Shown piece after piece: positions 17,690 through 38,640 of a stretch of 64,000 bases of DNA. The position numbers were made by a program, and so were the translations under genes. The notes below the pieces were generated by a model. That model was not told the origin of the DNA and did not search any database. It was given only the letters and a program-made list of their open reading frames with translations. The DNA is from Setoptus koraiensis (taxonomy: Eukaryota > Animalia > Arthropoda): the NCBI GenBank assembly GCA_048013815.1, contig CM106585.1, positions 13,640,001 to 13,704,000 on the forward strand, in the 5' to 3' direction. Position 1 is the stretch's first letter; each line of letters starts with the position of its first letter.

Positions 17690-20512
17690 TTATGTTGTAT
17701 CCTGACTGGCTATCTTTGCTAACTTACTCAAGCTCAGCAATGTCCTTTGCTTTTCTGGATTTATGTTTTCTACATTGGCCAATCTATCCAAAGTTACACT
17801 AGCTGCTTCGTACTGCTTAAGCTCTATTTGATGCAACCATTTCAATTGGTTGTGCTCCAGTAGGAATGCACTCAGTTTCGGGCTTGGTAAAGTTGCCAAC
17901 AACTCATTTTGTTTGCCCTCTTTCAAAAAATAATTAAACAGATATTCGGCAAAATCATCATACTTGGAAATATACAACTTCAACATTTCTTGGCTGTCAC
18001 AGGCTTCGCAAATTCTTGTCAGAGCATGGAAATCTCTGTATTTCTCTGCCAACTCTGCGGCGGGTTTGTATCGTGCGCTGATGAAAGGTTTGAAACATTT
18101 CAACCTATCATCTTCGTAGGATTTTTTAACTACAGCCATTCTAGGATCTTGATCATCGATATTCTCGATACGAGTCTGATATTCTTCAAATATCCAATTC
18201 GAAATATTCATCAGAGCTGCATAGACTTTATCTTTCGATTCAAGATTATCAACGATACTGGCTGATACTAAAGCTGTTTCTACTCCATGTTTCAGTACTA
18301 TATCATATTGTTCCATAAGTGCAGATTTACCACTCTGTTCACTTGGTTCAGAAGTCCATGGTATCTGTCCGTATTTCTCTGAGGTACCGCCTGAAAAATC
18401 GTTTGATTTCCGAAGATTTTGCACTCGTCGGAATACTTCTTCGAAAATTGAGGTCACATTCAAAACCAAGTCCACTATGCTTGATGTGTTCTGATTATGG
18501 ATTGTATGGAGGGCGTTCAGCTCGTAGGATATCAATCCATGCAACAGGCTATCCAATCTGCTGGGTTGTTTCAAGTAACTTTCGAAGCAGTGATTATTGT
18601 TCGGTTGCATGACAGGAGCTTGCTTGTTTGTGCTTGTCTTTGATGTTACTATAGATACGGTTTCCTCAATGATTTTTGTGAACTTCTTTTTTAGATGTAG
18701 GTCGATTAAAAGTAAGGAAACGACAAGTTTCTCCCGATGCTCCTTCAATGCAAAGTGAGTGGATATAGTCACATTGTTTCTCTTCAAACAACTCAATTCG
18801 GCCCACAAAGTAGAGTCTTTCAGAAAATCTATGAGAGCTCCATGCAAATCAGACTTGAATCTGATGATACTATTCGTTTTGGTGAACGACAGAGAGAATG
18901 CTGATCTGGTTGATTCTGGTAACCCATAAAGTTTAGCCTCTTGTATAGACTTGATATCATCATCTATTATTTCGAGACTTAGAGCAAAAGCAGCTTCGTT
19001 GATATCATGCTTACTATCTTGCGTCGAGTGAAAACGTAATATATCTTTAACAATATGATGGCATGTAACCAAGTCGTGCTTGTTGTGCTCTTGAAATGCT
19101 GATCGCAACTTGGTAATCGCATCATCTCCATAACTAACTTCAGATTCTTGATCGCTCATGTCTGCCAGCTGCGGATTATCAAAACCAATTACAGATGATG
19201 TATGTACTGAGACTAACCCATCTCTTTGGGTGAAAAGAAGCGGGTGACCATCAACTATGTTAGCTCCAATAATACTGTCCTGCTGATTATGGAAGTCTAC
19301 TACATCAATAATATCTCCATCAATTTTTGTCAAAAACAAGAACTTTCTATCATATACATAGCACATGGTAGAGTTCGTTGTTCTCCTTTCGACAAATCTC
19401 AAAGAAAGAAGTTGCTCTTCAGTTGACTTTGTGTAAGAGCATTTGTATAAATTGAGTGTACTAATGCTGGATATGTTGTTGTTTGGTTGATTTGGGTTAA
19501 ATTTGGCTATGGCGTAATGGACGATCTGAGGACTTGAGGTATGTTTCGAAGCAGCTAGCAAGATGATTAGTTCATTGCTTTTGGTGGTTATCATATCAAT
19601 TGGCCAAATAGTGACCTCATTGTAGTCGGTCTCTCTTTCCCACAATTTGTTAATACATGTAAGATGATCGAATATAGATTTTTGCAAGTCCCATGCGCTC
19701 ATAAGTTGGCTTGGTGGCAACCCGAAACTGTTAGTAAGCGTGCGTCTCTGTAATTTAAGATTTGATGACATAATAAATAGGTGACGATCGGAGCTAATGG
19801 TTTGAGATGTGTCTGCTGAAGATAAGTGAGACGGTTGTTTTACGACGGCAATCAATGGTCGACTTGATTCAACACTTTGATCATTCGGTATGGACCCAAA
19901 AAATAGGTTAGTCACTCGACGTCCGATTCCAGACAAAATGCTTTCAGGTGCGTTGAGCATGGAGCAATTGAGTATGTTTTTAGCATCATGGGCGGTGATG
20001 TCTATCGTCAAAAGAAACACAGAGCTTGTTGTAGTTCCGAGAGCAAATTCCAACTGTGACAAGGGGACTAAAGTGTAACACTCTTGTCCTTGTAAATCGG
20101 ATGCAACGGCCTCAGTGTGGCGGTCATTGGCAATGCTGGACCAGAATCTTATAGTTCCTTCAGGTGATACAGCTATGGTTGCAGGGACAGTGTGTGTTTT
20201 GCCCGTTGTGGTGCCATGTGGCATAAAAAATACGTGAATGAGATCTGCCCTATGGACAAGATCAGATGGTGGAAGCTGTAGCTCATAGCAAGGACTAAGC
20301 GTCCGCCTGGCTTTTGAGACCTGGCTTGTTGATTTGACATCTTTGAATTTCCATATGAACAATTTTCGTCCGCTTATTATCCATGCCCAGCCACGATCAC
20401 TCAATTTTACACTAATTGATGAGAACGATACTCCATCGGCACTCAGAGCTTCCACCACCAAGAATGGCAACAAAGAGTCATAATTGCGTCGTGTAATCTT
20501 AATTTCGGTCAT
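17690..20512 (-). CDS. Nup133: Nucleoporin Nup133, intronless CDS, C-terminally shortened
   Basis: LPFLVVEAL...GWAWIISGRKLFIWK (N-terminal beta-propeller start), LAEKYRDFHAL..ICE, LKWLHQI, TLLSLSKLA. First ATG at 20512; the track start is a TTG. Confidence 0.88.
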   Translation of the reverse strand: MTEIKITRRNYDSLLPFLVVEALSADGVSFSSISVKLSDRGWAWIISGRKLFIWKFKDVKSTSQVSKARRTLSPCYELQLPPSDLVHRADLIHVFFMPHGTTTGKTHTVPATIAVSPEGTIRFWSSIANDRHTEAVASDLQGQECYTLVPLSQLEFALGTTTSSVFLLTIDITAHDAKNILNCSMLNAPESILSGIGRRVTNLFFGSIPNDQSVESSRPLIAVVKQPSHLSSADTSQTISSDRHLFIMSSNLKLQRRTLTNSFGLPPSQLMSAWDLQKSIFDHLTCINKLWERETDYNEVTIWPIDMITTKSNELIILLAASKHTSSPQIVHYAIAKFNPNQPNNNISSISTLNLYKCSYTKSTEEQLLSLRFVERRTTNSTMCYVYDRKFLFLTKIDGDIIDVVDFHNQQDSIIGANIVDGHPLLFTQRDGLVSVHTSSVIGFDNPQLADMSDQESEVSYGDDAITKLRSAFQEHNKHDLVTCHHIVKDILRFHSTQDSKHDINEAAFALSLEIIDDDIKSIQEAKLYGLPESTRSAFSLSFTKTNSIIRFKSDLHGALIDFLKDSTLWAELSCLKRNNVTISTHFALKEHREKLVVSLLLIDLHLKKKFTKIIEETVSIVTSKTSTNKQAPVMQPNNNHCFESYLKQPSRLDSLLHGLISYELNALHTIHNQNTSSIVDLVLNVTSIFEEVFRRVQNLRKSNDFSGGTSEKYGQIPWTSEPSEQSGKSALMEQYDIVLKHGVETALVSASIVDNLESKDKVYAALMNISNWIFEEYQTRIENIDDQDPRMAVVKKSYEDDRLKCFKPFISARYKPAAELAEKYRDFHALTRICEACDSQEMLKLYISKYDDFAEYLFNYFLKEGKQNELLATLPSPKLSAFLLEHNQLKWLHQIELKQYEAASVTLDRLANVENINPEKQRTLLSLSKLAKIASQDTT

Positions 20513-20722
20513 AACTGGACAAATCAATATTTTGATAAAATGTAAAAAGATGTACTAGAATACACAAGACCAATAATTGATGATGATGTGGTCTTCGTAT
20601 GTGTGAATGTTTTATATGAAACAAGATATGTTAAGGTAAGGTAGGGAACCTTAGGTATGTTATCTTTCACTGGAGGCGATTCCTATTTGTGGGTAGTGAT
20701 TTTATTACATCCGATGAATGAA
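20512..20722 (-). promoter_or_regulatory. Nup133 upstream module, mirror copy of the HAT1 upstream module
   Basis: On the minus strand: 21-bp perfect block 20699..20719, 14/20 block 20662..20681, 15/16 block 20597..20612, and CAG|TT-ATG, all collinear with 21121..21332. Confidence 0.75.
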
Positions 20723-21120
20723 GTTTTTTAATAATCGATAAAACGTGGTATAAAATTTTTAAATAAGAAGATACACAGTTGTAATAATACTCTCAGGACA
20801 GGCACAGAAACTAATTGATGATTGAAGCCTGTAGAAAAGACCGCACAGATTGTGCGCACATGAAATCGTGCTCACACCTAACAAAGGTAATTGCCCACCC
20901 CACATGGCACTCATGATTTGGCGCCACTCGTAATATTTGACCATAAGGTTCTTCCAATCACTACGGCTTCATGGTCTCTACTAGATGCGACTATCAGTTA
21001 CCATTTATTTGTACTCACAACCCCATCAGTACGATAATTCACATTCACTATATGAAGGTATTGTCCCAAATTTAATCACCATTTGAACACCCCTAACATT
21101 TAACAACATTACAGAGATTA

Positions 21121-21332
21121 TTTATTCATCGGATGTAATAAAATTGTTCACTCACTCTGAGATCACCTCTATTGAATCATTGTGATTTTATTGTCAGTAA
21201 TCATTCAAAGCCTATAATAATATATCTGAGGTAACGGTTTTTTATTTTAAACATTCACATATACCCTAACGCTGACATCTATTGTATACTAACAATTTTT
21301 TGTTAAATAAATAATTTTCGGAGCCAGTCATG
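21121..21332 (+). promoter_or_regulatory. HAT1 upstream module with probable 5'UTR intron (21231..21327)
   Basis: attcatcggatgtaataaaat at 21124..21144, donor gag|gtaacg, acceptor ccag|tcATG. Confidence 0.7.
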
Positions 21333-22886
21333 ACTTCTGAAATCAAAATGGAGGAAGCCGAAAACCAAAATGTTGATCAAGCTACAACCATAGCCAATAA
21401 CACACCACATTCTACAACAACAGGGGAGGACACAGCACATTTGGCGGCCAGGTCAACCGGTTCCGATTTTTCTGACTTTACCGCCGATGGCAACTTTTGT
21501 GTGTACTTTAAACTCATTCGAGATCAGACCGACATCGAAGAGGATATCAAGCAAAATGCCTTCCTACCTGATTTTGTTCATCAATTCTTTGTTGAATCCG
21601 AAAGGATCTTCGGTTACAAGAAACCCATTATGAAAATGTTCTATTCTGCCAGTCAGCTAAAGCGTTACATCAGCTTTGAATATAGCGACAAACTCTCGCT
21701 TGAGAAACACGGCATCGAGCCAGACGATGTTATGAAGGCCATAGAGCCAGTATTACTGGAAGCTCCCTACACAACTAATATCAATCAATTCTCTTCCGAC
21801 TTGGAGAGTACTTCGGAGAAAGAATTCAGACCTCCAGGTCGATTGATCAAAGAATTCAGTGTCGAGTTCAATAAGCCGTCAATGTTGAGTAGAGCCCAGT
21901 TGGAACAGATTTGTGAAAGTATGGGCTCTTACCAAGCTAATGGCGGATCGGCCCCGAAGACGAATGGTAACCTATCTCTACCCAATGCCAGCTCAGGCAG
22001 ACTCGACCTTCTCGCAAGCAGACTCAACGGAGGAACAAATGCCACGACAACTAGCTCTTTCAGCGAACCTAAGAAACGCAACTTTTGCATATACAAGGCA
22101 TGTGTTGATGATGAAGGATTCAGACCTTTATTCGCTAAAATGCAAACATTTGTCATGTGGTTCATTGATGCAGCAAACATGATTGATGTTGATGATGTAC
22201 ATTGGGATTTCTTTTTGGTTTTCGAGAAACACAGCCCTGCAGCGTCCGCTGTAACTACTGAGGAGAGGTATTTCTTTGTTGGCTATGCCACAGTGTATCG
22301 TTACTATGCTTGGCCCGACAAAACGAGACCTAGAATTTCTCAGGTCCTCCTTTTACCACCATTCAGGAAAAACAGTATTGGTACCAGCCTCCTCCGCACC
22401 ATCTACGATTGGTACAAATCTCAACCAAGTACACTTGATATCACAGCAGAGGATCCAAATGAACAATTCATATCGATGAGAGATTATGTTGACTGCAAGA
22501 ATTGCATGGAACTCGAATCTTTCAAACCAGAAAATCTCATGACAGGTTGGTCTGATGAAATGGCTAAGGAAGCCCAACAAAAACTTCGATTGTGCCATCG
22601 ACAAGCAAGGAAGGTCTACGAAATACTCCGCCTGAAAAATCTTAATAGTGATGATGAAGAGGCCTACAGAAAATTCAGATTGGATATCAAGAACAGGCTC
22701 AATGGCCCAGCCCAGCGCGCTAAACTCGATTGTGAGAAATTAGAGAAGAAAGGGTATCCGTTGCCAGAAGAATTGCAAGCTAAACGTCTAGCTGATCACG
22801 CCAGGTACGAGTTATTGGAAGAAAATTATCAAGAGCTTGAAAAACAGTACAAGATGACCATCAAGAAGCTGCTTGAGTCATCATAG
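21330..22886 (+). CDS. HAT1: Histone acetyltransferase type B catalytic subunit, intronless
   Basis: FLPDFVHQFFVESERIFGY, MQTFVMWFIDAANMIDVDD..W.FF, FVGYATVYRYY, RPRISQVLLLPPFR..IG, DITAEDP, RKVYEILRL, YRKFRLDIKNRL. Confidence 0.93.
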   Translation: MTSEIKMEEAENQNVDQATTIANNTPHSTTTGEDTAHLAARSTGSDFSDFTADGNFCVYFKLIRDQTDIEEDIKQNAFLPDFVHQFFVESERIFGYKKPIMKMFYSASQLKRYISFEYSDKLSLEKHGIEPDDVMKAIEPVLLEAPYTTNINQFSSDLESTSEKEFRPPGRLIKEFSVEFNKPSMLSRAQLEQICESMGSYQANGGSAPKTNGNLSLPNASSGRLDLLASRLNGGTNATTTSSFSEPKKRNFCIYKACVDDEGFRPLFAKMQTFVMWFIDAANMIDVDDVHWDFFLVFEKHSPAASAVTTEERYFFVGYATVYRYYAWPDKTRPRISQVLLLPPFRKNSIGTSLLRTIYDWYKSQPSTLDITAEDPNEQFISMRDYVDCKNCMELESFKPENLMTGWSDEMAKEAQQKLRLCHRQARKVYEILRLKNLNSDDEEAYRKFRLDIKNRLNGPAQRAKLDCEKLEKKGYPLPEELQAKRLADHARYELLEENYQELEKQYKMTIKKLLESS

Positions 22887-23226
22887 TTTTTTTAAATACA
22901 ACCACAGCACCTCGGAATACTTCCTCGGATTAACCTCTTGTGCAAGGTTAATTTCAAATAAAAGCAATTTTATATATTTTTTCAAGCGTCATAACTCTTT
23001 TTGTGTGGGGTATATAGTTGCATAGATACGCCATCTGGGATACACTTTTTGGGGCACCGTCGTTTAGGCAGGATGGTTTGAGACACAAGGAACAACTATT
23101 ACGCTACGGTGGTAGTAGGATGGCAAAAAGAACAGTAGAGGACAGACGAGCTGGCAAGAAAAGTTGACGCGGAGTTTATTGCCGATGGTGTCGTCGGGGA
23201 AATTCATTATCAATAAGTTATATCGC

Positions 23227-23511
23227 TTAAGTATCAAGGCTGTCCAATCGTTTGAGTCTATCCCTCAAAAATTTCTGTATTTTCCTTTCGAACTCAATCT
23301 TTTCTTTATATTGTGAAAGCTCTGATTTGAGCGCCTTATTAACCAGCATAGCCTCCCTCAAATGGTGTTGTAAGAAGATGCATTTTGCCCTATATCTATT
23401 GTTTTTGGCCTCGTTACCTTCATCACTTTGTGAGCAACTGGACGACGATGAAGATTGAGTGGGGTAGTTCCGAGGATGTGATTGGCCTCCGAGTGTGTTG
23501 GCACCTTCCAT
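23227..23511 (-). CDS. INO80E/TFPT/TBRG1-type coiled-coil small protein
   Basis: RYRAKC..LQHHLREAMLVNKALKSELSQYKEKIEFERKIQKFLRDRL resembles the recalled INO80E N-terminal coil (YKKKYRNLK...ECFQEEL...SFLLDRL). Confidence 0.45.
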   Translation of the reverse strand: MEGANTLGGQSHPRNYPTQSSSSSSCSQSDEGNEAKNNRYRAKCIFLQHHLREAMLVNKALKSELSQYKEKIEFERKIQKFLRDRLKRLDSLDT

Positions 23512-24919
23512 TCTAATAAATAGTTTGCATTTGCTTTACAGACAGAAAATAGTCCAGTATGTAGAATTTGTCTGCAATACTGGAGATGAAATAAAGTGAA
23601 AAAAATTTCGTATGCCTTCAAATGAAATTATGTCTCATTTCAAATAACAAAGTAAGCGATTGTATGTTTATGACCGTCTCACCTCATAATTGAAAAATTG
23701 TGCGTATGCAGCTCTTCTGTGCAACTTCTAACAAATGTAGTGCCCTGGTCTCCACCCATCACGCACACCCACTCAATATCCGCGTACACCCGTGTGCCAT
23801 GAAAATCAAAGTGCTTATTTCACCCATTGACTACAATAACAAACCCAGACTGGGGCCAACAATTCAACTATACATCGACTAAATCATCACGTATGATTTT
23901 ACACGGTATGAGGTACAGTGTATATAGTAAATTGTCCTTTGAAGGAAATTGTATTAATTGTAGAGTCCAACCAATCAAGTCGGTATCAGCATTTGCCTTG
24001 TGCACCAGCTGTTCGTGGCTTTATGCCGGCAGTTCAGAGGCAGTTCATCTCTGTGATCAGTGATCGCACTGGAATCACACATTATTCGAGCTATTACAGT
24101 AAAGTGTGTCTGAACGTCGCTTTTTGGGACCAGACTCAATTCAAATAGAAAAAGTGTAAATAATCAGTAAAATTGAGAGAAAAACCATAGACACGCGACG
24201 TTTCGGGACAGTTATCTGTATTAGATTCTTGGATTACAGTATCAGACGCTGACAATGACTATGGATTCCCGCGATGATCGATGAATATTGAAAGGCACCA
24301 AGGCTTTCGCTTTGTTTATATCTTACTGACTGCTGATGAGAACAAATTTTTCCATTTGTCAAACTGAAATTCCTGATGGAAGTGTCGAGTCACCTGTCGG
24401 ACCTCCACTCAACTATGCAAAAACTGACCCTAGAAAACTACGAAAAACTCAAACGGTCTATCAAGTTGAATTATTATCTTCACTGTTCTCGATAGACTGT
24501 CAGATCCTTCGCAGCTAGTGTGGTCTATCTGTTGACAATTTGAGATTGTTCATGTAGAGGTCCAAAGGTGAATACAAAATTCGCTTGCTAGCGAGCGCCA
24601 TAGACAGGGCTTTCCAGTAGTGGGTAGGCGACGCATGCGCGAATTCGCTGTCTCATTTAGCACATAAGATGGCTGCTGTCAATCCAGCATTATGTATCTA
24701 TTTTCTCTTCAAAAATCAGCCAGAAAAGAGCCGACCATATGTTTCAATTGTTGATTTATCGCAGAATTTCTCTGGCACCTGACAATGTGTGTTGACAGAA
24801 ATTAATAATCAATTTAAAGCCCAGGAACAAATGGGGTTAGACACGTTGAATTTATGAGGCAGAAACTGGATGAAACTGGCATCGGCACCTGTCTCTTGTA
24901 GTCAACAATAGCATTAACC

Positions 24920-27231: not shown

Positions 27232-27254
27232 TTAATATACACAAGTGATTTAAG

Positions 27255-27794
27255 TTAGATAGAATTAGAGTTCTTTCTTTTTCTGTCGAGTAATTGTTTC
27301 CGTTGCTGACATTTAACGGCTAAATTTCTTGCGCCATTTAATTTATATCTCCTATTGAGACATTTTTCTTTTTGTGCCGCAACAATTTCTTTTTGGGCAA
27401 TAAAGAGCCAAACTCTCTTTCTCATAGCATCGGGACATCCAACGTCTTCATTGTAGATTGCGGATTGCAACAAGGAATCCGGATCGTCTTTAATTGCCAC
27501 TCGCTGCTTGGCTTTCTTTCTCAATCTCACTACTTTGATCATTTCCTTCAAGAAGAATTTGCTCATTAAAACTTTATGTCTAGCTCGCTTGTGTAATTTG
27601 TGAGTTTTGATCATTTCTTTTAGGAACAAAGTGTTGCTAGTAAAAGAAACAAGGTTAATATTCTCTTGCGGTGAAGGAGAATCATCTTCGACATGCCAAT
27701 CATACATATCGATGCTGTTGGCCTTCGGCGGGCGATCCTTCTGAAAGGTGGGTTGACACAGCCTTATGACATCGTCGAAGCTGTGTGGATGCAT
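27255..27794 (-). CDS. Stand-alone fragment resembling the N-terminal pre-HSA/HSA region of INO80 (179 aa)
   Basis: RKRVWLFIAQKEIVAAQKEKCLNRRYKLNGARNLAVKC aligns without gaps to recalled human INO80 RRKVWLSIVKKELPKANKQKASARNLFLTNSRKLAHQC (16/38 identical). No ATPase follows. Confidence 0.6.
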   Translation of the reverse strand: MHPHSFDDVIRLCQPTFQKDRPPKANSIDMYDWHVEDDSPSPQENINLVSFTSNTLFLKEMIKTHKLHKRARHKVLMSKFFLKEMIKVVRLRKKAKQRVAIKDDPDSLLQSAIYNEDVGCPDAMRKRVWLFIAQKEIVAAQKEKCLNRRYKLNGARNLAVKCQQRKQLLDRKRKNSNSI

Positions 27795-28440: not shown

Positions 28441-28861
28441 ATATCTCTCTAGCCAGTATTTACTATAGTGTGCTCTATCTACCGTATTGTGCGCTTTCGC
28501 CAATTGCCTATCGGTCACTTTTTTTGGGGTCGCCAGGGCGGCGCACTTGGATTTTCGTATGCAGTGTGTGCTGCAAGCGTGAGCAAACTGCCATCAGCGC
28601 GTTGGGTGAGGCGAGCGCAATGAGGCCACGTAGTGTCAATTAGTTGAAACATTTACCGAGACACTCTGTGCTCGGCTGTGCATCGTTGCCCGCCTCCCGC
28701 TCCTCTGGCGGAGAACAAAAAAGCGACCCGACAGTAATTGGCAAAAGCGCACACAATAGTCTATGGGTATCTCTAATTGGAATATATAGCTATTTGCGAA
28801 CGAAAAATAAATGGTATAGTTGACTCCTTTTATTCCAAAAATCTATTGATTTTGTTGTCAA

Positions 28862-29386
28862 ATGAATGCAATGACATTAACAAACGCAGCCATGAAGCCT
28901 GGACCTTCGGAAATAGTTTATAAAAATATGAAATTTATAATTATGGATAGGCCTTCTGATGCTACATTGCCCCAATTAGTTGAAGAGTTCAAAAAGCGCA
29001 ATGTCAGGGACGTTATTAGGGTGTGTGAGCCATCATACAAAACGGACTTATTAACTAAAGCCAATATTGAGGTTCACGATTGGCAATTTGATGATGGGTC
29101 TCCACCGTCACAAGAAGTCATAGATAATTGGTTCGAGCTTCTAAGAGAAAGATATAAAGAAAACAAAGATTGCTGTATGGCCGTTCATTGTGTGGCCGGA
29201 CTTGGCAGGGGCCCTGTAATGGTGGCATTAGCCTTGATGGAATTAGGCATGAAATACGAAGATACTATTGAATATATCAGAGAGAGGCGCCGTGGTGCAT
29301 TTAATCAAAAACAGCTTAAGTATTTAGCCTCATATAAGCCTAGGAATAGGTTGAGGACAAAAAATTCTAGTTGCACAATAATGTAG
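28862..29386 (+). CDS. PRL-1: PRL (PTP4A) protein tyrosine phosphatase
   Basis: RVCEPSY, W.FDDG.PP, CCMAVHCVAGLGR, RRGAFNQKQL, C-terminal CAAX (CTIM). Confidence 0.96.
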   Translation: MNAMTLTNAAMKPGPSEIVYKNMKFIIMDRPSDATLPQLVEEFKKRNVRDVIRVCEPSYKTDLLTKANIEVHDWQFDDGSPPSQEVIDNWFELLRERYKENKDCCMAVHCVAGLGRGPVMVALALMELGMKYEDTIEYIRERRRGAFNQKQLKYLASYKPRNRLRTKNSSCTIM

Positions 29387-29721
29387 TGAACTCTACCTAT
29401 TATTATTATTACTATTATTATTATTAACTAATTAATTAAAAGCAAACAACACACACACACAAAATCAATGACTTCAATTATAAAACATCAATACATCTCG
29501 AGATGGTTTCTATTATACCCCCTATACTATAAAATATACCAACAAAATAAAGCTTAAATATATCTATATAAAGCTATAATAATCAATCAACTGACAGAAC
29601 ATTCAATCGGATTGAAGCGAAATTTATACTACTAAATAACCAACTATTAGTTGATACTATTATTACAATGATTATTATTATTACTATACCTAATGCAATC
29701 AGCAAAGTCGGTATTGACATG

Positions 29722-32700
29722 TCATGTATGTAAACTTGTAGATAAACTTGGTCCGGCCTTACTCGTGTTGGTAGCTCTTGGCCTATAGGGTTGCTGTGAT
29801 TGACCAACTATCTCGTACAGTCTTGCTGCTTCCGTTGCAGCTTCTAAGCGTTTCAGTTTTTTCTTTGTCTTTCTCAATTGTGAATTTAAACTGAACGCTA
29901 TTGTTATAGCTAATAAGAAAACACTAGTAAATATCGAACCAACAATTATCATATTGGCTTTCCTCAGTGCCACATTCGGATCCTCTACACTACAATCGGT
30001 CTCTTTATAACCCTCCTCGCATTCGCAGAAGGCATGGTGATCATCGACTAGCCTACACTTGCCATGCTTGCAAGGTATTGTATTACAAACGTAGATACAA
30101 TATCTTTTATTATCACCGATATAATGGCGATCACATTGACAACGATAATCACCGACCTCGTTGACACATGTCGATACATTAGCCAACTCTTTACAGGCAT
30201 CAAATAGGCACTCGTTTATGTCCTCGCAAACTTCTTTGCGATAATCACCATAGTAAATATCACGTGTACCAATTGGTGTGTAACCGTATTGACAGGTACA
30301 AGTAAAATTAACTGTATCTACCATTTCACATTTAGTTTGTTTGTCGCAATAATCGAAGCTACTCTTACACGGATTGAACAATTTACGATGTTCAGCCAAT
30401 TGATCAAATGAGTCGCGTTTTATGAGTAAATTCGGTGCCATTAGATAGTATTCAGACCCCTCTTTGAATGTAAATATATATTTGGGTAGTTGTTTCTCAA
30501 GCAAAACTCTATCCGAGCGACTTTTTTCTCCCGTTGAATGCAATGTTAACTTGCAATTAATGTTAGCGTCCAATATTTCTAAATCTGTTCCATTTAAATA
30601 GTTCATTTGCATACTACTAATGGCGCTAAATGAGGGTAACCTAATGATTGGCGTTGACTTGATGTTGTAATTTTTCAATTGAGCTTCACATTCATCTACG
30701 TGAACTTTTATATTGCCTTCCATTAGGTCAAATGTACTTTTCATACTTGCAAGGGTCACCTCGCGCCAATCGACATACTCAGCGCGAAATCGATGTATCA
30801 AGGGATACCGATACGCGACACACTCTTTGTAGGCTTCCAAGCTTAGATCGGCTATGGCTGGATCACAGTAGGCAACCAGAATAGAATTAGCGGGTAATTC
30901 GTCCGATGTTATGGATTTAGGCCTGTTTTCAACTATTGGCATTGTATGATAATGCTGGTGACGCGTAGATGATTGATACAACCACATTGGATCGAAATTG
31001 CTAGGTGCCTTAAAAGTTGCATGAAACTCAACGACATCATAATTTAAGTAGCATCGTGCGTAAACATTAGCTTGGGCGGGTGTCTTTTGAGTAGTAGGGA
31101 TAATAGATGAAGAGGAATTGTATGAATCATTGACGCATTGCGAACTGGGACCGTCTTCCTCAGATCCGTGTAATACCATAGAGAAACCCGGCAAACACTC
31201 GCAGACAGATCGTCTTGAATTTATTCTTATACCATCGTGATCGTACACTATTAGACTAGTCTGGCCATAGTAGTTTGGATCCATCGTGGCAGTTCTACAC
31301 ATTCTATTAAAACGTTGGCATTCACTATTGAGCAGGTCACATTCATTAACACACCTGATTTTATCACGCGGCTTGTCTACCAAAAATTTTTTCTCAGGTG
31401 AACAGACACAAGTGTACGGTTTGATCTTCTTTGGACCATATGTGCCGCGTCTGCTGTTCGCATTAAATTGTTTGCTACTTGGTCTGTTCTGATCCCCATC
31501 GACAGACGTCTCTGGATCAGTGTCCAAATTGGCGAAGCGACTGAGTAAGAATTGCCAAGGTCTATGCAGGACTACACAAAAGGCATTCTTTTGTTCCACA
31601 CAATCCACAAAACCAATATTGCCTGGCTTGCATGGCTCTAGAATAGCATTGAAGTCTATCTTACACAGACCAGTTGATCTGTCTTGAACTAGTATGGGCT
31701 CATCGTCGCAATTGCATTCAAATGTTGGACGCCAGCTTGAAATTTTGACACTGTTTGGGCTTTCTTGATTAGAACGATCTGTTCCGTTAGTCGGTGAATA
31801 CGTTTGACTCGATGGCTTAACTTTACAACTTCCGCTTAGACAAACGTAAGTCAGAAGAGCCCGGAAGTTGTTACTAAATTTGGCAGCATCACACCAATTC
31901 AAGCATCTATCACCGACTCGTGCGTAACCTTGTCTATCGCACTCGCATTCGTACAATTTAGGAGGTCCTTCCGATTTAAGTATACAAATTTCGTTGGTAT
32001 CACAATTAAGATTGCACATCTCCTTCGTTGTGTAATAGTGGGACGTCTTTTCCCCGTCAGCATGATCTGATGAATCATCGTCACCATTTTCTGATATGTG
32101 CTTATTGTTGTTGTTGTCAGCAGCAATATGCATTTGGTCATCATTAAAATGATGATTCACAAAATCCAACGCTTCATTTATCTGTTCTTCCTCCTCCATT
32201 GGTTGATCAAAGAAGCACATATGGTCATCCACGCCTTTGTTTGTGCCAGGCTTGTAACCTGGATAACAGCTACAGTGGTAAGAATTATTATCCGTATCAA
32301 TTTGGCATAGATGTTGACATTCGTTTAGAATTGGCACTAAACAAATCACACTATCTTCTTGTAGCACGCATTTTGTGGTGCTCTTATCATGGTCGATCTG
32401 AGTTTTAGTATAACCCAATGGGCAGACACAGGTATAAAGTTGCTTGTCATAGGTTGCTATACACTTGGCCTCGCCACAAATCGATTCCTTATGGCATGGA
32501 TCATAGAGACGACAGAGACCTTTGTCCGTGGCCATATAACCAGCATTCTCATTACAAATGCACTTGCCCTCTTGACAAACTTCTGACAGCTGCTTACATC
32601 GAACACCTAAACACTTGTCGATTGGTCGACATTCGGCAATGTAAGCTGGATATTCTCTGGTATCTTTCTCACTCTTATGTTGTTTTCCGCTAGCTATTGG

Positions 32701-33528
32701 TTCGTCTGTAGATTGGCTTTGATTGTCCAACTCGTCGGAGTACGATGTCTTTGTAACTGTATCATCTATGTCAGATCTGTTCAAGTACTCAAATGATGAA
32801 GTAAATTCCCGATTGTACGAGGGCACATGATTATTGTGAACTATCAATTTGAATACAAAATACTCCTCATCTAGGCATGCGCACCGAAAGAATTTATCAT
32901 TCTTGACACATTCGCGCCCAATCTTGTGACAAATTTGATCACCGGTAAGTCCATTGGCTATTAAAGTTTTGCAAATATTTCTAGTTTGACATCTGTCACC
33001 ATAGAAGCCCTCCGGGCACTTACACTCCGCTATGCCTGGAGTTGGATGTATGCAAGTCCCCCCATTGAGACAGAAGAAGTCGTCTAGGCAATCGTCCTCG
33101 TACTGTGAGTTTGATGGACCAGTTGTGGAGGAAAAAATCTGAATATCTGGTGCAATCTTTTTTCCATCAGAGTTTGTCGAACCAATAATTCCTTCCGTAT
33201 CACTAGGCTTGTTGACTTCTTGTTCGGGTCGAATACCATTCTGTACCAGATCTAGAATCTTTGTATGGTCATCATTGGCAACGATTTTTTCCTTAAACGA
33301 ATCATCGTATGGTTGCGAATCTTTGATAATTTCTTTCTGTTGTGCATCCTGAATCTGAATGTGAGAGCAACTCAAACACTGAACAAAACCAAGAGTCAGA
33401 ATGATCACTGATTCTAGACTCAATGCCCTTTTAAATTTTTGGCTCTCAAATAATAATCTTAGCTTACACGATCTCATAAGATGATAGTGAAAATTATCAC
33501 TGATTATCGACATGTAAAAAAGATTCAT
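29722..33528 (-). CDS. Type I membrane protein with about a dozen EGF-like/cbEGF modules, intronless
   Basis: Signal-like VIILTLGFVQCLSC, EGF modules (CLNGGTC...CKCPEGFYGDRC; EDINECLFDAC...CVNEVGDYRCQC), TM helix IIVGSIFTSVFLLAITIAFSL, basic juxtamembrane tail. The start may be the later ATG at 33477. Confidence 0.85.
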   Translation of the reverse strand: MNLFYMSIISDNFHYHLMRSCKLRLLFESQKFKRALSLESVIILTLGFVQCLSCSHIQIQDAQQKEIIKDSQPYDDSFKEKIVANDDHTKILDLVQNGIRPEQEVNKPSDTEGIIGSTNSDGKKIAPDIQIFSSTTGPSNSQYEDDCLDDFFCLNGGTCIHPTPGIAECKCPEGFYGDRCQTRNICKTLIANGLTGDQICHKIGRECVKNDKFFRCACLDEEYFVFKLIVHNNHVPSYNREFTSSFEYLNRSDIDDTVTKTSYSDELDNQSQSTDEPIASGKQHKSEKDTREYPAYIAECRPIDKCLGVRCKQLSEVCQEGKCICNENAGYMATDKGLCRLYDPCHKESICGEAKCIATYDKQLYTCVCPLGYTKTQIDHDKSTTKCVLQEDSVICLVPILNECQHLCQIDTDNNSYHCSCYPGYKPGTNKGVDDHMCFFDQPMEEEEQINEALDFVNHHFNDDQMHIAADNNNNKHISENGDDDSSDHADGEKTSHYYTTKEMCNLNCDTNEICILKSEGPPKLYECECDRQGYARVGDRCLNWCDAAKFSNNFRALLTYVCLSGSCKVKPSSQTYSPTNGTDRSNQESPNSVKISSWRPTFECNCDDEPILVQDRSTGLCKIDFNAILEPCKPGNIGFVDCVEQKNAFCVVLHRPWQFLLSRFANLDTDPETSVDGDQNRPSSKQFNANSRRGTYGPKKIKPYTCVCSPEKKFLVDKPRDKIRCVNECDLLNSECQRFNRMCRTATMDPNYYGQTSLIVYDHDGIRINSRRSVCECLPGFSMVLHGSEEDGPSSQCVNDSYNSSSSIIPTTQKTPAQANVYARCYLNYDVVEFHATFKAPSNFDPMWLYQSSTRHQHYHTMPIVENRPKSITSDELPANSILVAYCDPAIADLSLEAYKECVAYRYPLIHRFRAEYVDWREVTLASMKSTFDLMEGNIKVHVDECEAQLKNYNIKSTPIIRLPSFSAISSMQMNYLNGTDLEILDANINCKLTLHSTGEKSRSDRVLLEKQLPKYIFTFKEGSEYYLMAPNLLIKRDSFDQLAEHRKLFNPCKSSFDYCDKQTKCEMVDTVNFTCTCQYGYTPIGTRDIYYGDYRKEVCEDINECLFDACKELANVSTCVNEVGDYRCQCDRHYIGDNKRYCIYVCNTIPCKHGKCRLVDDHHAFCECEEGYKETDCSVEDPNVALRKANMIIVGSIFTSVFLLAITIAFSLNSQLRKTKKKLKRLEAATEAARLYEIVGQSQQPYRPRATNTSKAGPSLSTSLHT

Positions 33529-34359
33529 TTACCAAGATATTTGGATATGTCATATAACGATGTTATGCCAGTAAACAAATGATTACTTGAAGAGCACGCT
33601 GTATAGAGAAATTTTACACAATCGCAATCGTGTAATGTTTCAATGGAATGCAGGGGCAAGATTTCGTGTGGATCTACTAAACAAAAAAGTAGCGATATCT
33701 TTCTAAACAAAAAACGTTGATTAACACCACACCATTGCCGATTAGGCGACATCAATTAACAAACACAACGATGCATGTGATGCAACGCAAAATAAACAAG
33801 TGTGGTATTAATAGGTATTATCATTTATGATCTAGAAAAAAAGAAAACTAGTATAATCATAGAGTTTCATTGTTATTTTCAGAATTTCGTTCCAAACAAA
33901 CTCCTGACAACTGTTGGCAACTAAATCAGATATGGCAACAACTGAACGGTCGCGATTCAATCTGTTATCAATTCAACTAGCTAATAACTGATATAAGCAT
34001 GGTTTGAGAGCACCTGAGCCATATTTGATATTGTTTCCATGGCGATCCTTTTTTTTTCAATGTATATTATTATATCCTCTTGCAAATAGCTTTATCAACC
34101 TAAACGAAGTTGGAGGATAGTTTGTCTGTTTGAAAGTTACACCGCGCCAATCAAGGGCACAAAAAATTAGTACAGCTGATCAGCATAAGAGGGCGCGGTT
34201 TTCTCTTCGAATGAAAAGTTGCATGTTGTGCAGCTGGACTATCTTACACCATTGCGATTGTCAATTTGAAAACACGAGTTGGTCTCTGGGTGATCTCGTC
34301 GAAAATGCTGCATTATCTTGCATTTAAATTGCGTCCGCCTTGGTTATATCTTACTGACT

Positions 34360-35817
34360 ATGGGAAATATTTCCAAAGCTCATAAAGCCATACCGTTGGT
34401 TGTTGTCCTGGGGCCAACTAATTGTGGGAAATCGCGACTTGCCATTGAGTTGGCCCAAAGATTTAGTGGCGAAATTATAAGCGCGGACTCCATGCAAATA
34501 TACAAAGGTTTGGATATTGTGACTAACAAAGTCAACAAGCAGGAACAAAAGCTAGCCAAGCATCATATGATTGACGTCGCAGATCCTTTGAAGAATTACA
34601 GTGTTGTCGACTTTCGGAATAAATCACTTAAGTTAATTGACACTTTGGTAGCTGAGAAAAAAATACCAATTATTGTCGGAGGGACACACTACTACATAGA
34701 ATCACTATTATGGAAGGAATTTCTCATACAAAGTGGAAACTCTCATGGAAATTCTAATATGATAGATAATGAATTGAAAGTTTTCAGTGATACAAGAAAC
34801 GAGCTCATTCACACAGAGGATGATATATGCCCAGAGAAAATTCTAAGCAAAACCATCTACCTGGATAGCTTCAAAGGTATTTCGTCTGACAAACTATGGA
34901 ATGTATTGGAGCAACTAGACCCGAAAAGCGCGTACAGCTACCATCCAAATGATAGGCGACGGGTACAGAGGGCCCTGCAAATCTTACAAACAGAGAAGAG
35001 GGGCATGTGTGAGGTGCTCGATGAGAAGAATATCATTGGAGAGCACTATAGTCGTGGCGGTCTCCTTAGATATGAAAATACGTGTGTATTTTGGTTGGAC
35101 TGTGATAAACAGATACTCGATAAACGCCTCGATGAAAGAGTTGACAAAATGCTCGAAAATGGACTTTTAAAGGAGTTGGAAGATTTTCATAAAGAGTATA
35201 ATTTGAATAGGACAAAAAATTCTTTACCTCATGACTACACACGTGGTGTATTTCAAACAATTGGATTCAAAGAATTCCATGACTACTTGATGTTGCAGGG
35301 CGAAGAAGAGAAGGTGTCGGAAAGAGGTCAGAATCTACTAAAAGTTTCTATAGAAAACATGAAAATGGCCACGAGAAGATATGCCAAAAAACAAAACAGG
35401 TGGATTGCGCGTAGAATGTTAGATCAAAGCACAAGAGATTTGCCTCCCATATTCAGATTAGATGTAACCAAAGTGCTGAAAGAAGAGGAAAGCTGGGATG
35501 AAGTTATAAGACCGTTGGCTTATACGGTATTAGAAAGTTTCTTGAATGAGACTAGACTACCCCATCACATACTACCATACATCGCAGAGCCTGAAAGAAA
35601 GTGGGACACTCAGAACTCGCCGGGTAAATTCTATTGCGAATCTTGTGAGAAAACTGTATTGGGAACTTACTTATGGAATATACACATTACTAGCGGTAAA
35701 CACAAAAAACGCCTAGCATCCATTCGAAAGAAATCCTTTGCGTCGCAAGAGTCGTCTCGGCAGAAAAGTCGGCAAGATGAAGCTGCCACTGATGACGCCC
35801 GAGAATGTCAATGTTGA
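34360..35817 (+). CDS. TRIT1: tRNA dimethylallyltransferase (MOD5/TRIT1), intronless
   Basis: VVVLGPTNCGKS, GEIISADSMQIYKGLDIVTNK, PIIVGGTHYY, HPNDRRRV.RAL, FQTIGFKEF, TRRYAKKQ, C-terminal matrin-type Zn finger CESC...HITSGKH. Confidence 0.95.
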   Translation: MGNISKAHKAIPLVVVLGPTNCGKSRLAIELAQRFSGEIISADSMQIYKGLDIVTNKVNKQEQKLAKHHMIDVADPLKNYSVVDFRNKSLKLIDTLVAEKKIPIIVGGTHYYIESLLWKEFLIQSGNSHGNSNMIDNELKVFSDTRNELIHTEDDICPEKILSKTIYLDSFKGISSDKLWNVLEQLDPKSAYSYHPNDRRRVQRALQILQTEKRGMCEVLDEKNIIGEHYSRGGLLRYENTCVFWLDCDKQILDKRLDERVDKMLENGLLKELEDFHKEYNLNRTKNSLPHDYTRGVFQTIGFKEFHDYLMLQGEEEKVSERGQNLLKVSIENMKMATRRYAKKQNRWIARRMLDQSTRDLPPIFRLDVTKVLKEEESWDEVIRPLAYTVLESFLNETRLPHHILPYIAEPERKWDTQNSPGKFYCESCEKTVLGTYLWNIHITSGKHKKRLASIRKKSFASQESSRQKSRQDEAATDDARECQC

Positions 35818-36369
35818 TATGTTATTAGATATGATAGTCTATTTAATAAAGAAAATAAATGTTTAAATTAAATTGCGTTTAGAGAGTTATCCTCAATTTA
35901 ATGCTCCAGTTCATGATTTATCATTCTGGATCGACTGACTCCCTTATCGTCAAGTTCTTTTCATCAAATCAGATTGACGTTAACTCGAATAGACAATCAT
36001 AGGTGATTACATCCTTGTTTCGGCCTCTCTAGTACTCCAAGTAGGAGTTCCTAGTTGGGACAGGAGATGTTCTCTCCCGTTCAAGGAAAACTGCGTTAGG
36101 TATACGGGCCGAATCGCTACGCTCATTATAGGTCGAATGCATTTTGAAAATTGCGCTACAGATGCGTGCGCACAATTGCAGACTGTAATGTTTTAGAAGC
36201 GCATGGTGCATCCGGCTTTCAACTAAAGCATCGCCGAGCCGTTCTTTCGCATGCGGTGCCATTCGGTTGTGCTTGCAGACATGAATTGTAATTTTACAGC
36301 ATTATTGAATCAGGTCTATGTCGCTGGAAACACCTAAATATTCGCTAATTTAAGGATATAAATACTACT
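35812..36369 (+). repeat. Left arm of a ~550-bp inverted duplication (TRIT1 3'UTR plus RpS11 upstream region)
   Basis: Reverse complement of 38111..38640. The core 35872..36180 differs by about 6 substitutions and one ~12-nt indel. Confidence 0.97.
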
Positions 36370-36407
36370 CAACTGCTGGTATCAATTATTAATTAGATTC
36401 CCTCAAG

Positions 36408-37334
36408 ATGTCTGAGCAGGTAAGTGGGAGCCTTTTGCCGGAGCTGGATACATATTTTAATTATCCATCTCGGTGTTGAAAATGTCGTGAAAGTTCAACC
36501 ATTCCCCTAATGTACCCCCACGTTAACAAGTAGTATCTGTATAATTGCTGAGACTAATCCTTATTATATTCTTATCTTCCACTTACAAATCCCACCTATA
36601 AATCTACGAATCACCCCACGATGGCATCTTTAGACGGAAAAGGCTTTTCAAAGACAACCAACAATCTTCATCAGTAACAAACCCTCAGATCTGAAGAAGA
36701 AGATACCCAAAAAGAAATTGAGGTACACTAGAAATGTTGGTTTAGGATTCAAAACACCACGTGACGCCATTGAAGGCAAATATGTCGACAAGAAATGTCC
36801 TTTTACTGGTAACGTCTCCATACGAGGTCGCATATTAAGAGGTATCGTGGTAAAAATGAAGATGCAGCGGACAATAGTTATCAGAAGAGACTACCTCCAT
36901 TACGTGCGCAAATACAACAGGTTTGAGAAACGCCATCGTAATATGTCCGTGCATTGCTCTCCATGCTTCAGGTAATTATTAATCATCCACCCAGTTATGT
37001 TGTTAGACCCTCAGCTTGTTTGGCTTGACATGATGAAAACACACGACGGTCTTCTGAAAGTGTATATGAGGATAAACAGTATTTTTCAGTTATCCCTGTC
37101 TGAATCAAGCCAAACATAAGTTCCTGTCTAACTTGCTTCCTAGTTGCAGTCTCTACAACAATTATCTAACTAACCCCATTCATTTCGGTCCATTCTCTCT
37201 CTATCAACAGAGACATTGCACCCGGAGACGTTGTCACTGTAGGAGAGTGCCGACCACTCAGTAAGACCGTCAGATTTAATGTTCTAAAGGTTACAAAAGC
37301 CTCTGGCGCAAAGAAACAATTTAAAAAATTCTAA
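36408..37334 (+). CDS. RpS11: 40S ribosomal protein S11 (uS17), 3 exons
   Basis: Exons 36408..36419, 36634..36971, 37211..37334. [16 protein letters not shown]...[34 protein letters not shown]...[15 protein letters not shown]. Confidence 0.98.
37017..37116 (+). ncRNA. Intronic box C/D snoRNA with two 28S rRNA guides (U35/snR73-like at D', snR38/SNORD1-like at D)
   Basis: Perfect 12-bp terminal stem (37017..37028 / 37105..37116), box C ATGATGA 37030, D' CTGA 37054, C' ATGAGGA 37066, D CTGA 37100. Guides CACGACGGTCT (37042..37052) and CAGTTATCCCTGT (37087..37099) complement the conserved LSU sequences AGACCGUCGUG and ACAGGGAUAACUG. Confidence 0.92.
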
Positions 37335-37548
37335 ATAAACATGGTCCTTGATTAAAAAAAAAACATTTCTCTCACCTTATGCATTCTCTTCCTAATTTTC
37401 ACTCATTTACGCGCTTTGAGTTTCTGGTGTGACATTCATGAGAATAATGACCAGCATTGTTTATTTTGTAGATTTCGGAATTTACAGTGGAAATTTAAGT
37501 ATACTAGATCGGTAATGTTGAGAAGTATAACGGAATAACTAAGCAGCA

Positions 37549-38076
37549 TTAATCATCCTTATCTTTGGCTCCATGTTTGAGAATTCTTGTGAACTCTAGA
37601 TAATCAAATTGACCGTTCTTATTGATCGGTGCCTCACGGTACATTTCTTCGACATCTTCGTCACTGAAACGATCGCCCATGGTTGTGAGTAACTCTCGGA
37701 GGCGTTCCTCATGAATGAAACCCCCATTATCTTCATCGAAGCATGCAAATGCGTTCTTTATTACGTCTTCGGGATCTGTCCCTTGTAATCTCTCCCCAAA
37801 TAGAGTGAGGAACATGGTGAAATTGATTGGACCAGGGGCCTCATTCATCATGGACTCTAGAAACTGGTCGTCCGGGTTCTTACCCAAAGATGCCAACATA
37901 TCATGAAGATCCTCCTTGTCGATGAATCCATCTCTGTTTTGATCTATCATATTGAAGGCCTCTTTGAATTCCTGTATTTGTGCTTGGTCGAACATGGCAA
38001 ATACATTGGATGTTGCCCTTTGGGCTCTTTGCTTGTGTCGGGTGACACCACGACCCTTGGCTTTACGGCTGGCCAT
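37549..38076 (-). CDS. sqh: Non-muscle myosin regulatory light chain, intronless CDS
   Basis: [41 protein letters not shown]...[14 protein letters not shown]...[11 protein letters not shown]. Confidence 0.98.
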
Positions 38077-38110
38077 TGATCCTGTTAATAGCGGAATCTT
38101 ATAGCGGAAT

Positions 38111-38640
38111 AGTAGTATTTATATCTTTAAATAAGCAAATATGTAGGTGTTTCCAGCAAAATAGACCTGATTTAATGATGCAAACACTATCGAATGACGC
38201 TGCATTCGAAAGGACGGCTCAGCGATGCTTTAGTTGAAAGCCAGATGCACCATATACGCCTTTAAAAAAAAAACAATACAGCTTGCAATTGTGCGCACGC
38301 ACCTGTAGCGCAATTTTCAAAATGCATTTGACCTATAATGAGCGTAGCGATTCGGCCCGTATACCTAACGCAGTTTTCCATGAACGGGAGAGAACATCTC
38401 CTGTCCCAACTCTGGAGTACTAGAGAGGCCGAAACAAGGATGCAATCACCTATGATTGTCTATTCGAGTTAACGTCAATCTGATTTGATGAAAAGAACTT
38501 GACGATAAGGGAGTCGGTCGCTCCAGAATGATAAATCATGAACTGGAGCATTAAATTGAGGATAACTCTCTAAACGCAATTTAATTTGAACATTTATTTT
38601 CTTTATTAAAGAGGCTATCTAATCCAATAACATATCACCA
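38111..38640 (-). repeat. Right arm of the inverted duplication, directly upstream of sqh
   Basis: Reverse complement matches 35812..36369, including the AATAAA of the TRIT1 3'UTR and gatataaatactact at the inner end. Confidence 0.97.

Follow-up and report, generated by a model that had tools for sequence, protein, structure and literature searches.

Copies of one probable promoter upstream of RpS11, sqh and CCT2, and mirrored 5' ends of neighbouring genes, in an eriophyoid mite genome

According to the usual view, promoters either evolve in situ or are contributed by transposons. In an eriophyoid mite genome, we found that three single-copy essential genes with unrelated functions, RpS11 (ribosome), sqh (cytoskeleton) and CCT2 (chaperonin), carry upstream copies of the same sequence, which appears to be one ordinary promoter, and that several further gene pairs have mirrored 5' ends. 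We estimate a probability of about 70% for the whole account, namely that the RpS11 promoter was duplicated to sqh and CCT2, that part of the sequence later underwent conversion, and that the process is recurrent. If this is true, small duplications of local DNA are a means by which genes in a strongly compacted animal genome can obtain ready-made promoters. Such duplications would constitute a concrete, datable mechanism for rewiring and coupling housekeeping gene expression, and the breakpoints of micro-rearrangements would be findable from sequence alone. Coordinates below refer to the window, the whole stretch of 64,000 nucleotides that was analyzed, unless a contig is given.

Results

An inverted repeat brackets RpS11 and sqh

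The convergent genes RpS11 and sqh are bracketed by an inverted repeat of about 560 bp, far beyond chance expectation. The elements of the locus are as follows.

34360..35817, plus strand: TRIT1 (tRNA isopentenyltransferase), whose stop codon is the outer edge of the left arm
35807..36369, plus strand: left arm, 563 bp, corresponding to the whole TRIT1-RpS11 intergenic region
36408..37334, plus strand: RpS11, CDS exons 36408-36419, 36634-36971 and 37211-37334, with Pfam S17 domains
37549..38076, minus strand: sqh, non-muscle myosin regulatory light chain, 175 aa, one exon
38111..38645, minus strand: right arm, 535 bp, an inverted copy of the left arm

The arms align over 527 columns with 42 mismatches (92.0% identity) and four indels (12, 8, 24 and 3 nt), and an assembly artefact was ruled out as their source because of these 42 substitutions and 4 indels. 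The left arm begins about 10 nt short of the last base of the TRIT1 stop codon and stops 8 nt after the TATA box. Between its inner end and the RpS11 ATG at 36408 are 39 nt; for the right arm, the distance to the sqh ATG (38076, minus strand) is 35 nt. The arms flank a 1.74-kb two-gene segment (36370-38110). Both boundaries were examined, and no homology was found past the inner arm ends or into the TRIT1 coding sequence. An earlier note had described RpS11 and sqh as a young pair with homologous, inverted upstream modules near the start codons, and the identity of the arms and the position of their ends confirm that description. The coincidence of the outer arm boundary with the TRIT1 stop codon is an additional observation, for which no simple model accounts well.

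The product of sqh was identified as a smooth/non-muscle myosin regulatory light chain (E=1e-92), and the second-best EF-hand match in the genome has 44% identity. For RpS11, exon boundaries were taken from the sequence and the genome was searched exon by exon, not with a joined CDS. No paralogue of either gene was found in the genome; since RpS11 and sqh are each single-copy, gene paralogy was ruled out as the cause of the duplicated upstream region. The upstream homology is supported as a true duplication of DNA, with a putative promoter role.

A third copy lies upstream of CCT2

Each arm stops 8 nt beyond its TATA box, and a third, older copy of the promoter-proximal part (about 260 bp, 73% identity) was found upstream of CCT2, 243 kb away.

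36357..36364, plus strand: RpS11 TATA box (TATAAATA), 51 nt before the RpS11 ATG
38116..38123, minus strand: sqh TATA box in the right arm, 47 nt before the sqh ATG
36136..36398, plus strand: promoter-proximal module, RpS11 copy, including the TATA box and 28 nt past the end of the sqh copy
G000:C1:13433175-13433430, minus strand: promoter-proximal module, CCT2 copy, the third copy

The gene downstream of the third copy was identified as that for TCP-1 beta (E=2e-34, vs 1e-14 for other subunits), and this copy is without an inverted partner nearby. All three copies face their downstream gene in the same orientation, with the TATA box at -51 (RpS11), -47 (sqh) and -69 (CCT2) relative to the ATGs. 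The TATA box lies in a 13-nt block (36356-36368) that is longer than any other block without differences among the three. Judging from position alone, sqh and CCT2 would use these copies as promoters, and copies of one promoter probably drive all three of these essential housekeeping genes, which are unrelated to one another.

The TATA position (-47 to -69) and the conservation of the TATA block are in keeping with a common Pol II promoter.

A sequence-profile search of the whole 48.8-Mb genome recovered the RpS11, sqh and CCT2 copies only, and all other matches in the genome-wide BLAST and profile searches were at E 0.5-1. Weak profile matches (L007-L009, 13-15 bits) were attributed to noise or to a local tandem repeat and discarded. 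The other 5'-capture loci did not match the module profile above noise (best 6.2 bits, E 0.26), and a 44-nt degenerate pattern had no match in the metagenome contigs scanned. The earlier note had proposed local inverted duplication; because the CCT2 copy lies 243 kb away, the spread was not purely local.

RpS11 is the likely donor

RpS11 is likely to be the donor because the homology of RpS11 and CCT2 extends 28 nt further than the sqh copy does. A 24-nt segment is likewise common to RpS11 and CCT2 and absent in sqh. In the part common to all three copies, the K2P distances are 0.17 (RpS11-sqh), 0.35 (RpS11-CCT2) and 0.42 (sqh-CCT2). Lineage-specific changes number 15 in sqh and 8 in RpS11, a difference that is not significant (p=0.21).

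From these sequence comparisons, we suggest the following history. The starting point would have been unique TRIT1-RpS11 intergenic DNA carrying the TATA-box promoter of RpS11. An earlier duplication may have placed its proximal 260 bp or so, comprising the TATA box and a putative start-site region, before CCT2, and a DNA-level duplication would have placed an inverted copy directly before sqh, leaving 8 nt between the TATA box and the junction and 35 nt between the junction and the ATG. The core and proximal promoter of sqh are now most likely supplied by the right-arm copy. After the RpS11/sqh duplication (flank K about 0.17-0.18), a mid-arm tract of about 300 bp was probably homogenised (K about 0.02-0.05). 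The physical route may have been a micro-inversion with staggered breaks, or fold-back or template-switch repair.

A low-divergence core within the arms

Divergence along the arms is mosaic, at about 15%, 2.4% and 15% in succession (maximum chi-square permutation p=0.001).

35865..36161, plus strand: low-divergence core of the left arm, with its partner at about 38303-38587 in the right arm

The suggestion in the earlier note that gene conversion keeps the arms alike agrees with this mosaic, and the core is likely to be a gene-conversion tract. Selection on an embedded element, such as a small RNA, a small ORF or an enhancer, would also keep a 300-bp core alike and would account for the contrast between 2.4% divergence in the core and about 15% on either side. 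We consider this unlikely. The minus-strand fold (z=-1.97, or -2.0 rounded) speaks for such an element, but the plus-strand fold has z=-0.8 against shuffles and no Rfam match was found in the arms at E<=1; a structured RNA gene was rejected on these grounds. An ORF of 33/37 codons covers part of the core, but between the arms it differs by two replacements and a 4-codon in-frame indel, with zero silent changes, and was set aside as a gene. The core is absent from the CCT2 copy and is therefore not needed by the common promoter, and the equal divergence of the two flanks is as expected for one old duplication followed by one later conversion tract.

Origin of the copies and relation to known systems

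Two other origins for the copies were considered. Under one, the module would be a fragment of a mobile element, a transposon or solo LTR acting as a portable promoter, which inserted three times near gene starts. An old, dispersed repeat does occur in head-to-head spacers elsewhere in this genome: the palindrome in the ABCE1 spacer has three more copies (67-70% identity), all between divergent genes. The module, however, is not a transposon family, because BLAST and profile searches of the whole genome recovered just three copies. Their boundaries differ (563, 535 and about 260 bp), and the left copy coincides exactly with the DNA between TRIT1 and RpS11. Neither terminal inverted repeats nor a target-site duplication was seen at the arm ends, no duplicated flank was seen at 38111 or 38645, and no ORF in the arms exceeds about 37 aa. 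All copies point the same way relative to the gene that follows and have their TATA box 47-69 nt ahead of its ATG, which also argues against this origin; we regard it as highly improbable. Transposon-derived promoters resemble the present case in that one promoter sequence lies upstream of unrelated genes; unlike them, the RpS11 module is present in three copies, lacks transposon hallmarks and has an ordinary intergenic region as its source.

The inverted repeat might instead be the neutral scar of a micro-inversion of about 2 kb with staggered breaks, in which case the sqh promoter would lie elsewhere, for example beyond the right arm. The geometry is that of known inversions: 59% of fixed Drosophila inversions are flanked by inverted duplications of unique sequence with a median of 321 bp and about 88% identity (PMC1885836), and the arms here flank their 1.74-kb two-gene segment alike. 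As with staggered breaks, inverted copies directly flank one segment and the sequence is non-repetitive (three copies genome-wide). A scar without a promoter role is nevertheless quite unlikely. With just 35 nt between the arm and the sqh ATG, the start of transcription must lie within or beyond the arm, and the arm places a TATA box at -47. Moreover, the same module occupies the same position before CCT2, where it has no inverted partner nearby, and no other stretch is invariant in all three copies over as great a length as the TATA block.

Duplication of the RpS11 promoter thus remains the preferred reading, and it shares features with several described processes. Ranz et al. 2007 (PLoS Biol, PMC1885836) likewise reported inverted copies of ancestrally unique sequence flanking a segment, with sizes (median 321 bp, up to about 1.9 kb, about 88% identity) comparable to the 560 bp and 92% found here. 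Unlike in that study, the flanked segment is just 1.74 kb and only putatively inverted with respect to the ancestral order, and the duplicate appears to be a promoter that was placed before another gene and was also copied 243 kb away. Fold-back duplication, by fold-back priming at double-strand breaks, yields mirror copies of local DNA (PMC10622511). Such a process would fit the head-to-head palindromic spacers of DAD1/akirin and PAN3/Sirt1 described below, whereas the classical products are adjacent palindromes and the RpS11/sqh arms have two genes between them. In chimeric genes and 5'-end capture, a new upstream region is likewise obtained from another gene via DNA duplication. DAD1/akirin and PAN3/Sirt1 are of this type, as their first codons are shared; in contrast, the RpS11/sqh/CCT2 copy ends before the ATG, so that the proteins are untouched and the promoter alone is shared. 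RpS11 and sqh are convergent with their own copy each and do not have the arrangement of a bidirectional promoter, which the head-to-head pair Nup133/HAT1 has.

Two mirrored islands between Nup133 and HAT1

Nup133 and HAT1 are head-to-head genes with an 817-bp spacer, which holds two pairs of mirrored islands.

20699..20722, minus strand: island 2, Nup133 side, -187 from the Nup133 ATG (20512)
21121..21144, plus strand: island 2, HAT1 side, 23/24 match, -186 from the HAT1 ATG (21330)
20597..20621, minus strand: island 1, Nup133 side, -85 from the Nup133 ATG
21240..21264, plus strand: island 1, HAT1 side, 21/25 match, -66 from the HAT1 ATG

The best mirror score is 43, vs a maximum of 29 in 300 dinucleotide shuffles, and the two islands are collinear, with centres within 9 nt of each other. 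Allowing up to 3 mismatches, the 48.8-Mb genome contains the island-2 24-mer at no other site. Between the islands, alignment scores are no better than those of shuffles, and a palindrome of the whole spacer was ruled out, since the islands alone align. The earlier note had presented this pair as an old case with whole homologous modules; the mirrored islands agree with an old relationship, but the modules as wholes were not recovered, the rest of the spacer being unalignable. The two genes also share an 11-mer over the ATG (10/11) and the protein start MT(S)EIK, which is suggestive and not significant alone.

Nup133/HAT1 is probably a further case, far older and decayed to the point that recognizable similarity is left in just two short cis elements and perhaps around the start codon. 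Alternatively, the spacer could be an ordinary bidirectional promoter whose binding sites, the islands, evolved independently. The unalignable sequence between them would agree with this, and the spacer between the EGF-protein gene and TRIT1 also has a mirrored 18-mer (-89/-98), so short symmetric elements may be common to promoters in general. This alternative seems somewhat doubtful to us: a 23/24 match that is unique in the genome far exceeds the length of a binding site, the two islands are collinear and centred within 9 nt of each other, and the two genes have the ATG context and the MT(S)EIK start in common, a kind of sharing also seen in the verified capture cases.

Mirrored 5' ends at other loci

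Mirror copies of a neighbour's 5' end were found at three further loci. DAD1/akirin has a 122-nt, 92% inverted repeat that takes in the first 19 codons, and the halves of its spacer are 80% identical. PAN3 and Sirt1 both begin with MSQSSDE, and a gapped mirror alignment extends over about 250-300 nt through the start codons. At eEF2/RpS24, there are two mirrored blocks, 73 and 61 nt long, in collinear order. Since these three sequence-checked loci hold, the recurrence within the genome that the earlier note had anticipated is supported: in this streamlined eriophyoid mite genome, genes appear repeatedly to have had their 5' end replaced by that of a neighbour, copied usually in mirror orientation. 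For AP-4/E2F, the sequence examined held only 62 nt upstream of AP-4.

More tentatively, the exchange of a promoter or whole 5' end for the mirror copy of a neighbour's could be a frequent and still active way in which regulation evolves in streamlined eriophyoid mite genomes. Micro-inversions or fold-back repair within very short stretches of intergenic DNA would drive it and gene conversion would preserve the copies, in which case many unrelated essential genes might be co-regulated on paralogous promoters. DAD1/akirin, PAN3/Sirt1 and eEF2/RpS24 are selected loci, and together with a 264-kb sample they are not an unbiased estimate of frequency. In that sample, mirrored spacers scored as significant five times; two were GTT/GCT low-complexity runs and were discarded. 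A significant, non-low-complexity mirrored element was thus present in 3 of the 13 head-to-head spacers, and RpS11/sqh was the only inverted repeat in the sample with arms ending beside two ATGs.

Inverted upstream copies at RpS11 and sqh

The inverted upstream modules of RpS11 and sqh described in the earlier note proved sound, with boundaries beside both ATGs. The features of the locus, in window positions, are as follows.

34360–35817: tRNA isopentenyltransferase gene (TRIT1), stop codon at 35815–35817
35807–36369: left arm, upstream of RpS11
36408–36419, 36634–36971, 37211–37334: RpS11 exons read from the sequence, S17 domains confirmed (Pfam)
37549–38076, minus strand: sqh, smooth/non-muscle myosin regulatory light chain (E=1e-92)
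38111–38645: right arm, upstream of sqh

A repeat search of the window gave four adjacent inverted segments, which jointly make up the two arms. A gapped alignment of the two arms contained 527 aligned columns with 42 mismatches (28 transitions and 14 transversions; 92.0% identity) and indels of 12, 8, 24, and 3 nt, and no alignment was found outside either boundary. Because the arms differ from each other, an assembly artefact was ruled out as their source. The left arm corresponds exactly to the intergenic DNA between the TRIT1 stop codon and RpS11, its outer boundary coinciding with that codon. At the gene-proximal end, TATAAATA occurs in both arms, 51 nt upstream of the RpS11 ATG and 47 nt upstream of the sqh ATG, and the homology ends 8 nt past it. 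RpS11 and sqh, each single-copy in a genome search, are convergent, and thus each arm is directed into its own gene. The RpS11 exons were handled one by one.

The window spans C1:13640001–13704000. The assembly consists of 48.76 Mb in two contigs (24.22 and 24.53 Mb; C1 and C2), and the published eriophyoid assembly of Setoptus koraiensis has two chromosomes with an N50 of 24.53 Mb (PMC11920263). Eriophyoid genomes have few introns and tiny intergenic regions (PMC7738191). Among named relatives, the TRIT1 protein is closest to that of the eriophyoid mite Aceria tosichella (51% identity); a Logan assembly contains an 82%-identical relative. To the right of the sqh arm, more than 5 kb (38650–44000) contains no long ORF, which is unusual for so compact a genome; this region could hold a non-coding gene, a many-exon gene, or the displaced old upstream region of sqh.

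The arms were rejected as an RNA gene: an Rfam search gave no match within them, and the fold of the arm core was no more stable than those of shuffled sequences (z=−0.8 and −2.0). The only Rfam matches were C/D snoRNA-like and lay inside RpS11 intron 2, namely snoR09 at 37025–37108 on the plus strand (44.5 bits, gathering score 50, E=8e-5) and an overlapping, weaker snoR38 match at 37058–37163.

Mosaic divergence of the arms

Mismatches are spread unevenly along the arms (maximum chi-square p=0.001, 2000 permutations), at the following rates along the left arm.

Outermost 58 nt: about 15%
35865–36161: about 2.4%
Inner ~185 nt: about 15%

A near-identical centre between equally diverged flanks is the pattern that would be expected from one old RpS11/sqh duplication followed by one gene-conversion tract in the arm centre; selection on some element in the arm core is an alternative to conversion. 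At C1:13556829–13567628, an 841-aa gene has a partial second copy in inverted orientation ~8 kb away, beyond three other genes. The identity of these copies is likewise mosaic (99.5%, 94%, 79%, and 78%), pointing to recent gene conversion. Mosaic identity of nearby inverted copies is thus not unique to RpS11/sqh.

A third copy upstream of CCT2 and the probable direction of copying

The promoter-proximal ~260 bp of the left arm (the module) has a 72–73% match at C1:13433175–13433430 on the minus strand, found by whole-genome BLAST directly upstream of an ORF identified as TCP-1 subunit beta (CCT2; E=2e-34 vs 1e-14 for other subunits). A whole-genome search with a profile built from the sequences of the three copies alone returned just those three, and the module was therefore rejected as a repeat family; the next matches (E 0.5–1) look like noise.

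The CCT2 ATG is preceded by a TATA box 69 nt upstream, and RpS11–CCT2 homology extends 28 nt past the TATA block, across a TCAAT motif ~27 nt downstream of the TATA box that may be an initiator. The sqh copy ends at TATA+8 and is without a 24-nt segment found in the RpS11 and CCT2 copies. Over the part common to all three, K2P distances were 0.17 (RpS11–sqh), 0.35 (RpS11–CCT2), and 0.42 (sqh–CCT2). By this extended homology, the truncation and gap in sqh, and the distances, the RpS11 copy is the most complete and most central of the three. The simplest reading would be that the RpS11 promoter was the source, with the CCT2 copy made first and the sqh copy later; sqh and CCT2 presumably use their copies as promoters. 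The 13-nt TATA block (36356–36368) is the longest block invariant across the three copies, and shorter ones lie at 36150–36156, 36203–36210, 36214–36221, and 36324–36331.

Promoter use, the direction of transfer, the conversion, and the mechanism at RpS11, sqh, and CCT2 are inferred. Among documented processes, the nearest match is the formation of inversions through staggered breaks, whose breakpoints carry unique sequence in inverted duplicate; such duplications were found at 17 of 29 Drosophila inversions, with a median of 321 bp and about 88% identity (PMC1885836). Like such duplications, the RpS11/sqh arms flank a segment, here of two genes, but a single inversion of this simple kind fails to fit all the details of the locus. 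With RpS11 as the native owner, it would imply an ancestral distance of about 45 nt from the TRIT1 stop to the sqh ATG. Template switching or fold-back repair (PMC10622511) is an equally possible source of the arms. If the arms recombined, the two-gene segment would be turned around with each gene still behind a promoter copy, and the arrangement would thus tolerate inversion.

Recurrence of promoter and 5'-end copying

Three preselected loci were located through Pfam families and their DNA was then read. At DAD1/akirin, a 122-nt inverted repeat (92%) takes in the start codons of both genes along with the first 19 codons; there are two more collinear arms, and the spacer halves are 80% identical over 375 nt. 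MSQSSDE is the start of both the PAN3 and the Sirt1 ORF, and a mirror alignment with gaps, ~250–300 nt long, passes through their start codons. In the eEF2/RpS24 spacer, two mirrored blocks, one of 73 nt (78%) and one of 61 nt (75%), are collinear. In a profile comparison, none of these loci matched the RpS11 module; each event therefore copied its own local DNA, and the recurrence in this genome is real. Judged from the sequences of a 264-kb sample and these three loci, promoter/5'-end copying between unrelated genes recurs in this genome. The earlier note's recurrent local promoter capture was accordingly right in kind, as it recurs at the loci checked, but incomplete, as the module also moved 243 kb. 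We found no description of such copying in eriophyoid mites in the literature searched; the underlying mechanisms are already known.

The sample (the window plus C1:13.40–13.60 Mb) contained six local inverted repeats by self-BLAST. The proposal that inverted-repeat ends lie beside two ATGs held for RpS11/sqh but not for the other five: two consist of coding paralogues or gene fragments in inverted orientation, two are located not upstream of genes but at their 3' ends or slightly beyond, and one is a palindrome in the ABCE1 spacer (C1:13499767–13500448; 295 bp, 70%, 100-bp spacer) that has no Rfam match. Its unit has three further copies (67–70%) on both chromosomes, all between divergent genes, e.g., upstream of a UBC13-like gene, and is thus probably an old dispersed repeat.

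Among 63 ORF-defined genes of the sample, same-orientation upstream homology was significant for Nup133/HAT1 alone, aside from a tandem gene duplicate. A ~575-aa gene is duplicated in tandem at C1:13409173–13415015 (78% over 2.1 kb, upstream regions 66% similar). Significant mirrored elements other than low-complexity ones were found in 3 of 13 head-to-head spacers: those of ABCE1, Nup133/HAT1, and EGF-protein/TRIT1, the last with a mirrored 18-mer (17/18; 33618–33635 and 34244–34261) at −89/−98 from the ATGs (z=4.9 vs shuffles).

The Nup133/HAT1 spacer

ATG at 20512, minus strand: Nup133 (Pfam Nucleoporin_N)
ATG at 21330, head-to-head with Nup133: HAT1 (Pfam Hat1_N, HAT1_C)

Homologous inverted modules had also been claimed for this pair; the similarity is non-random but weak, as only two islands align. 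The left half of the spacer scored 43 at best against the reverse complement of the right half, whereas 300 dinucleotide shuffles gave 21.0 ± 2.3 (maximum 29). The best two mirror matches, with centres at 20921.5 and 20930.5, are collinear and comprise a 24-mer (23/24) at −187/−186 from the ATGs and a 25-mer (21/25) at −85/−66. The segments between the islands scored under the shuffle means, and the 24-mer had no further genome copy at ≤3 mismatches. Across the ATG, the genes match at 10 of 11 nt and their products start with MTEIK and MTSEIK, a local alignment being not significant; this common context and start resembles the verified cases of copied 5' ends. On this thin evidence, the spacer probably goes back to a very old mirror duplication of which selected elements alone survive.

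A perfect 10-nt palindrome, TGTGCGCACA, lies at 20851–20860, 70–80 nt left of the mirror centre (0.05 expected per window), and a related GTGCGCAC core is present in the RpS11/sqh/CCT2 module. The two may represent a candidate site for a common factor.

Other repeats and paralogues in the window

A 46-nt element (24095–24140) recurs at 89–91% identity at several chromosome 2 sites; it was rejected as a tRNA, since ARAGORN finds none in the window. The segment 28270–28760, just upstream of a dual-specificity phosphatase gene, has dozens of 70–90% matches on both chromosomes and is, by these matches, a dispersed repeat or gene-family fragment. The phosphatase ORF itself (28892–29380) has a paralogue of 79% nucleotide identity on the other chromosome (C2:18674028–18674516).
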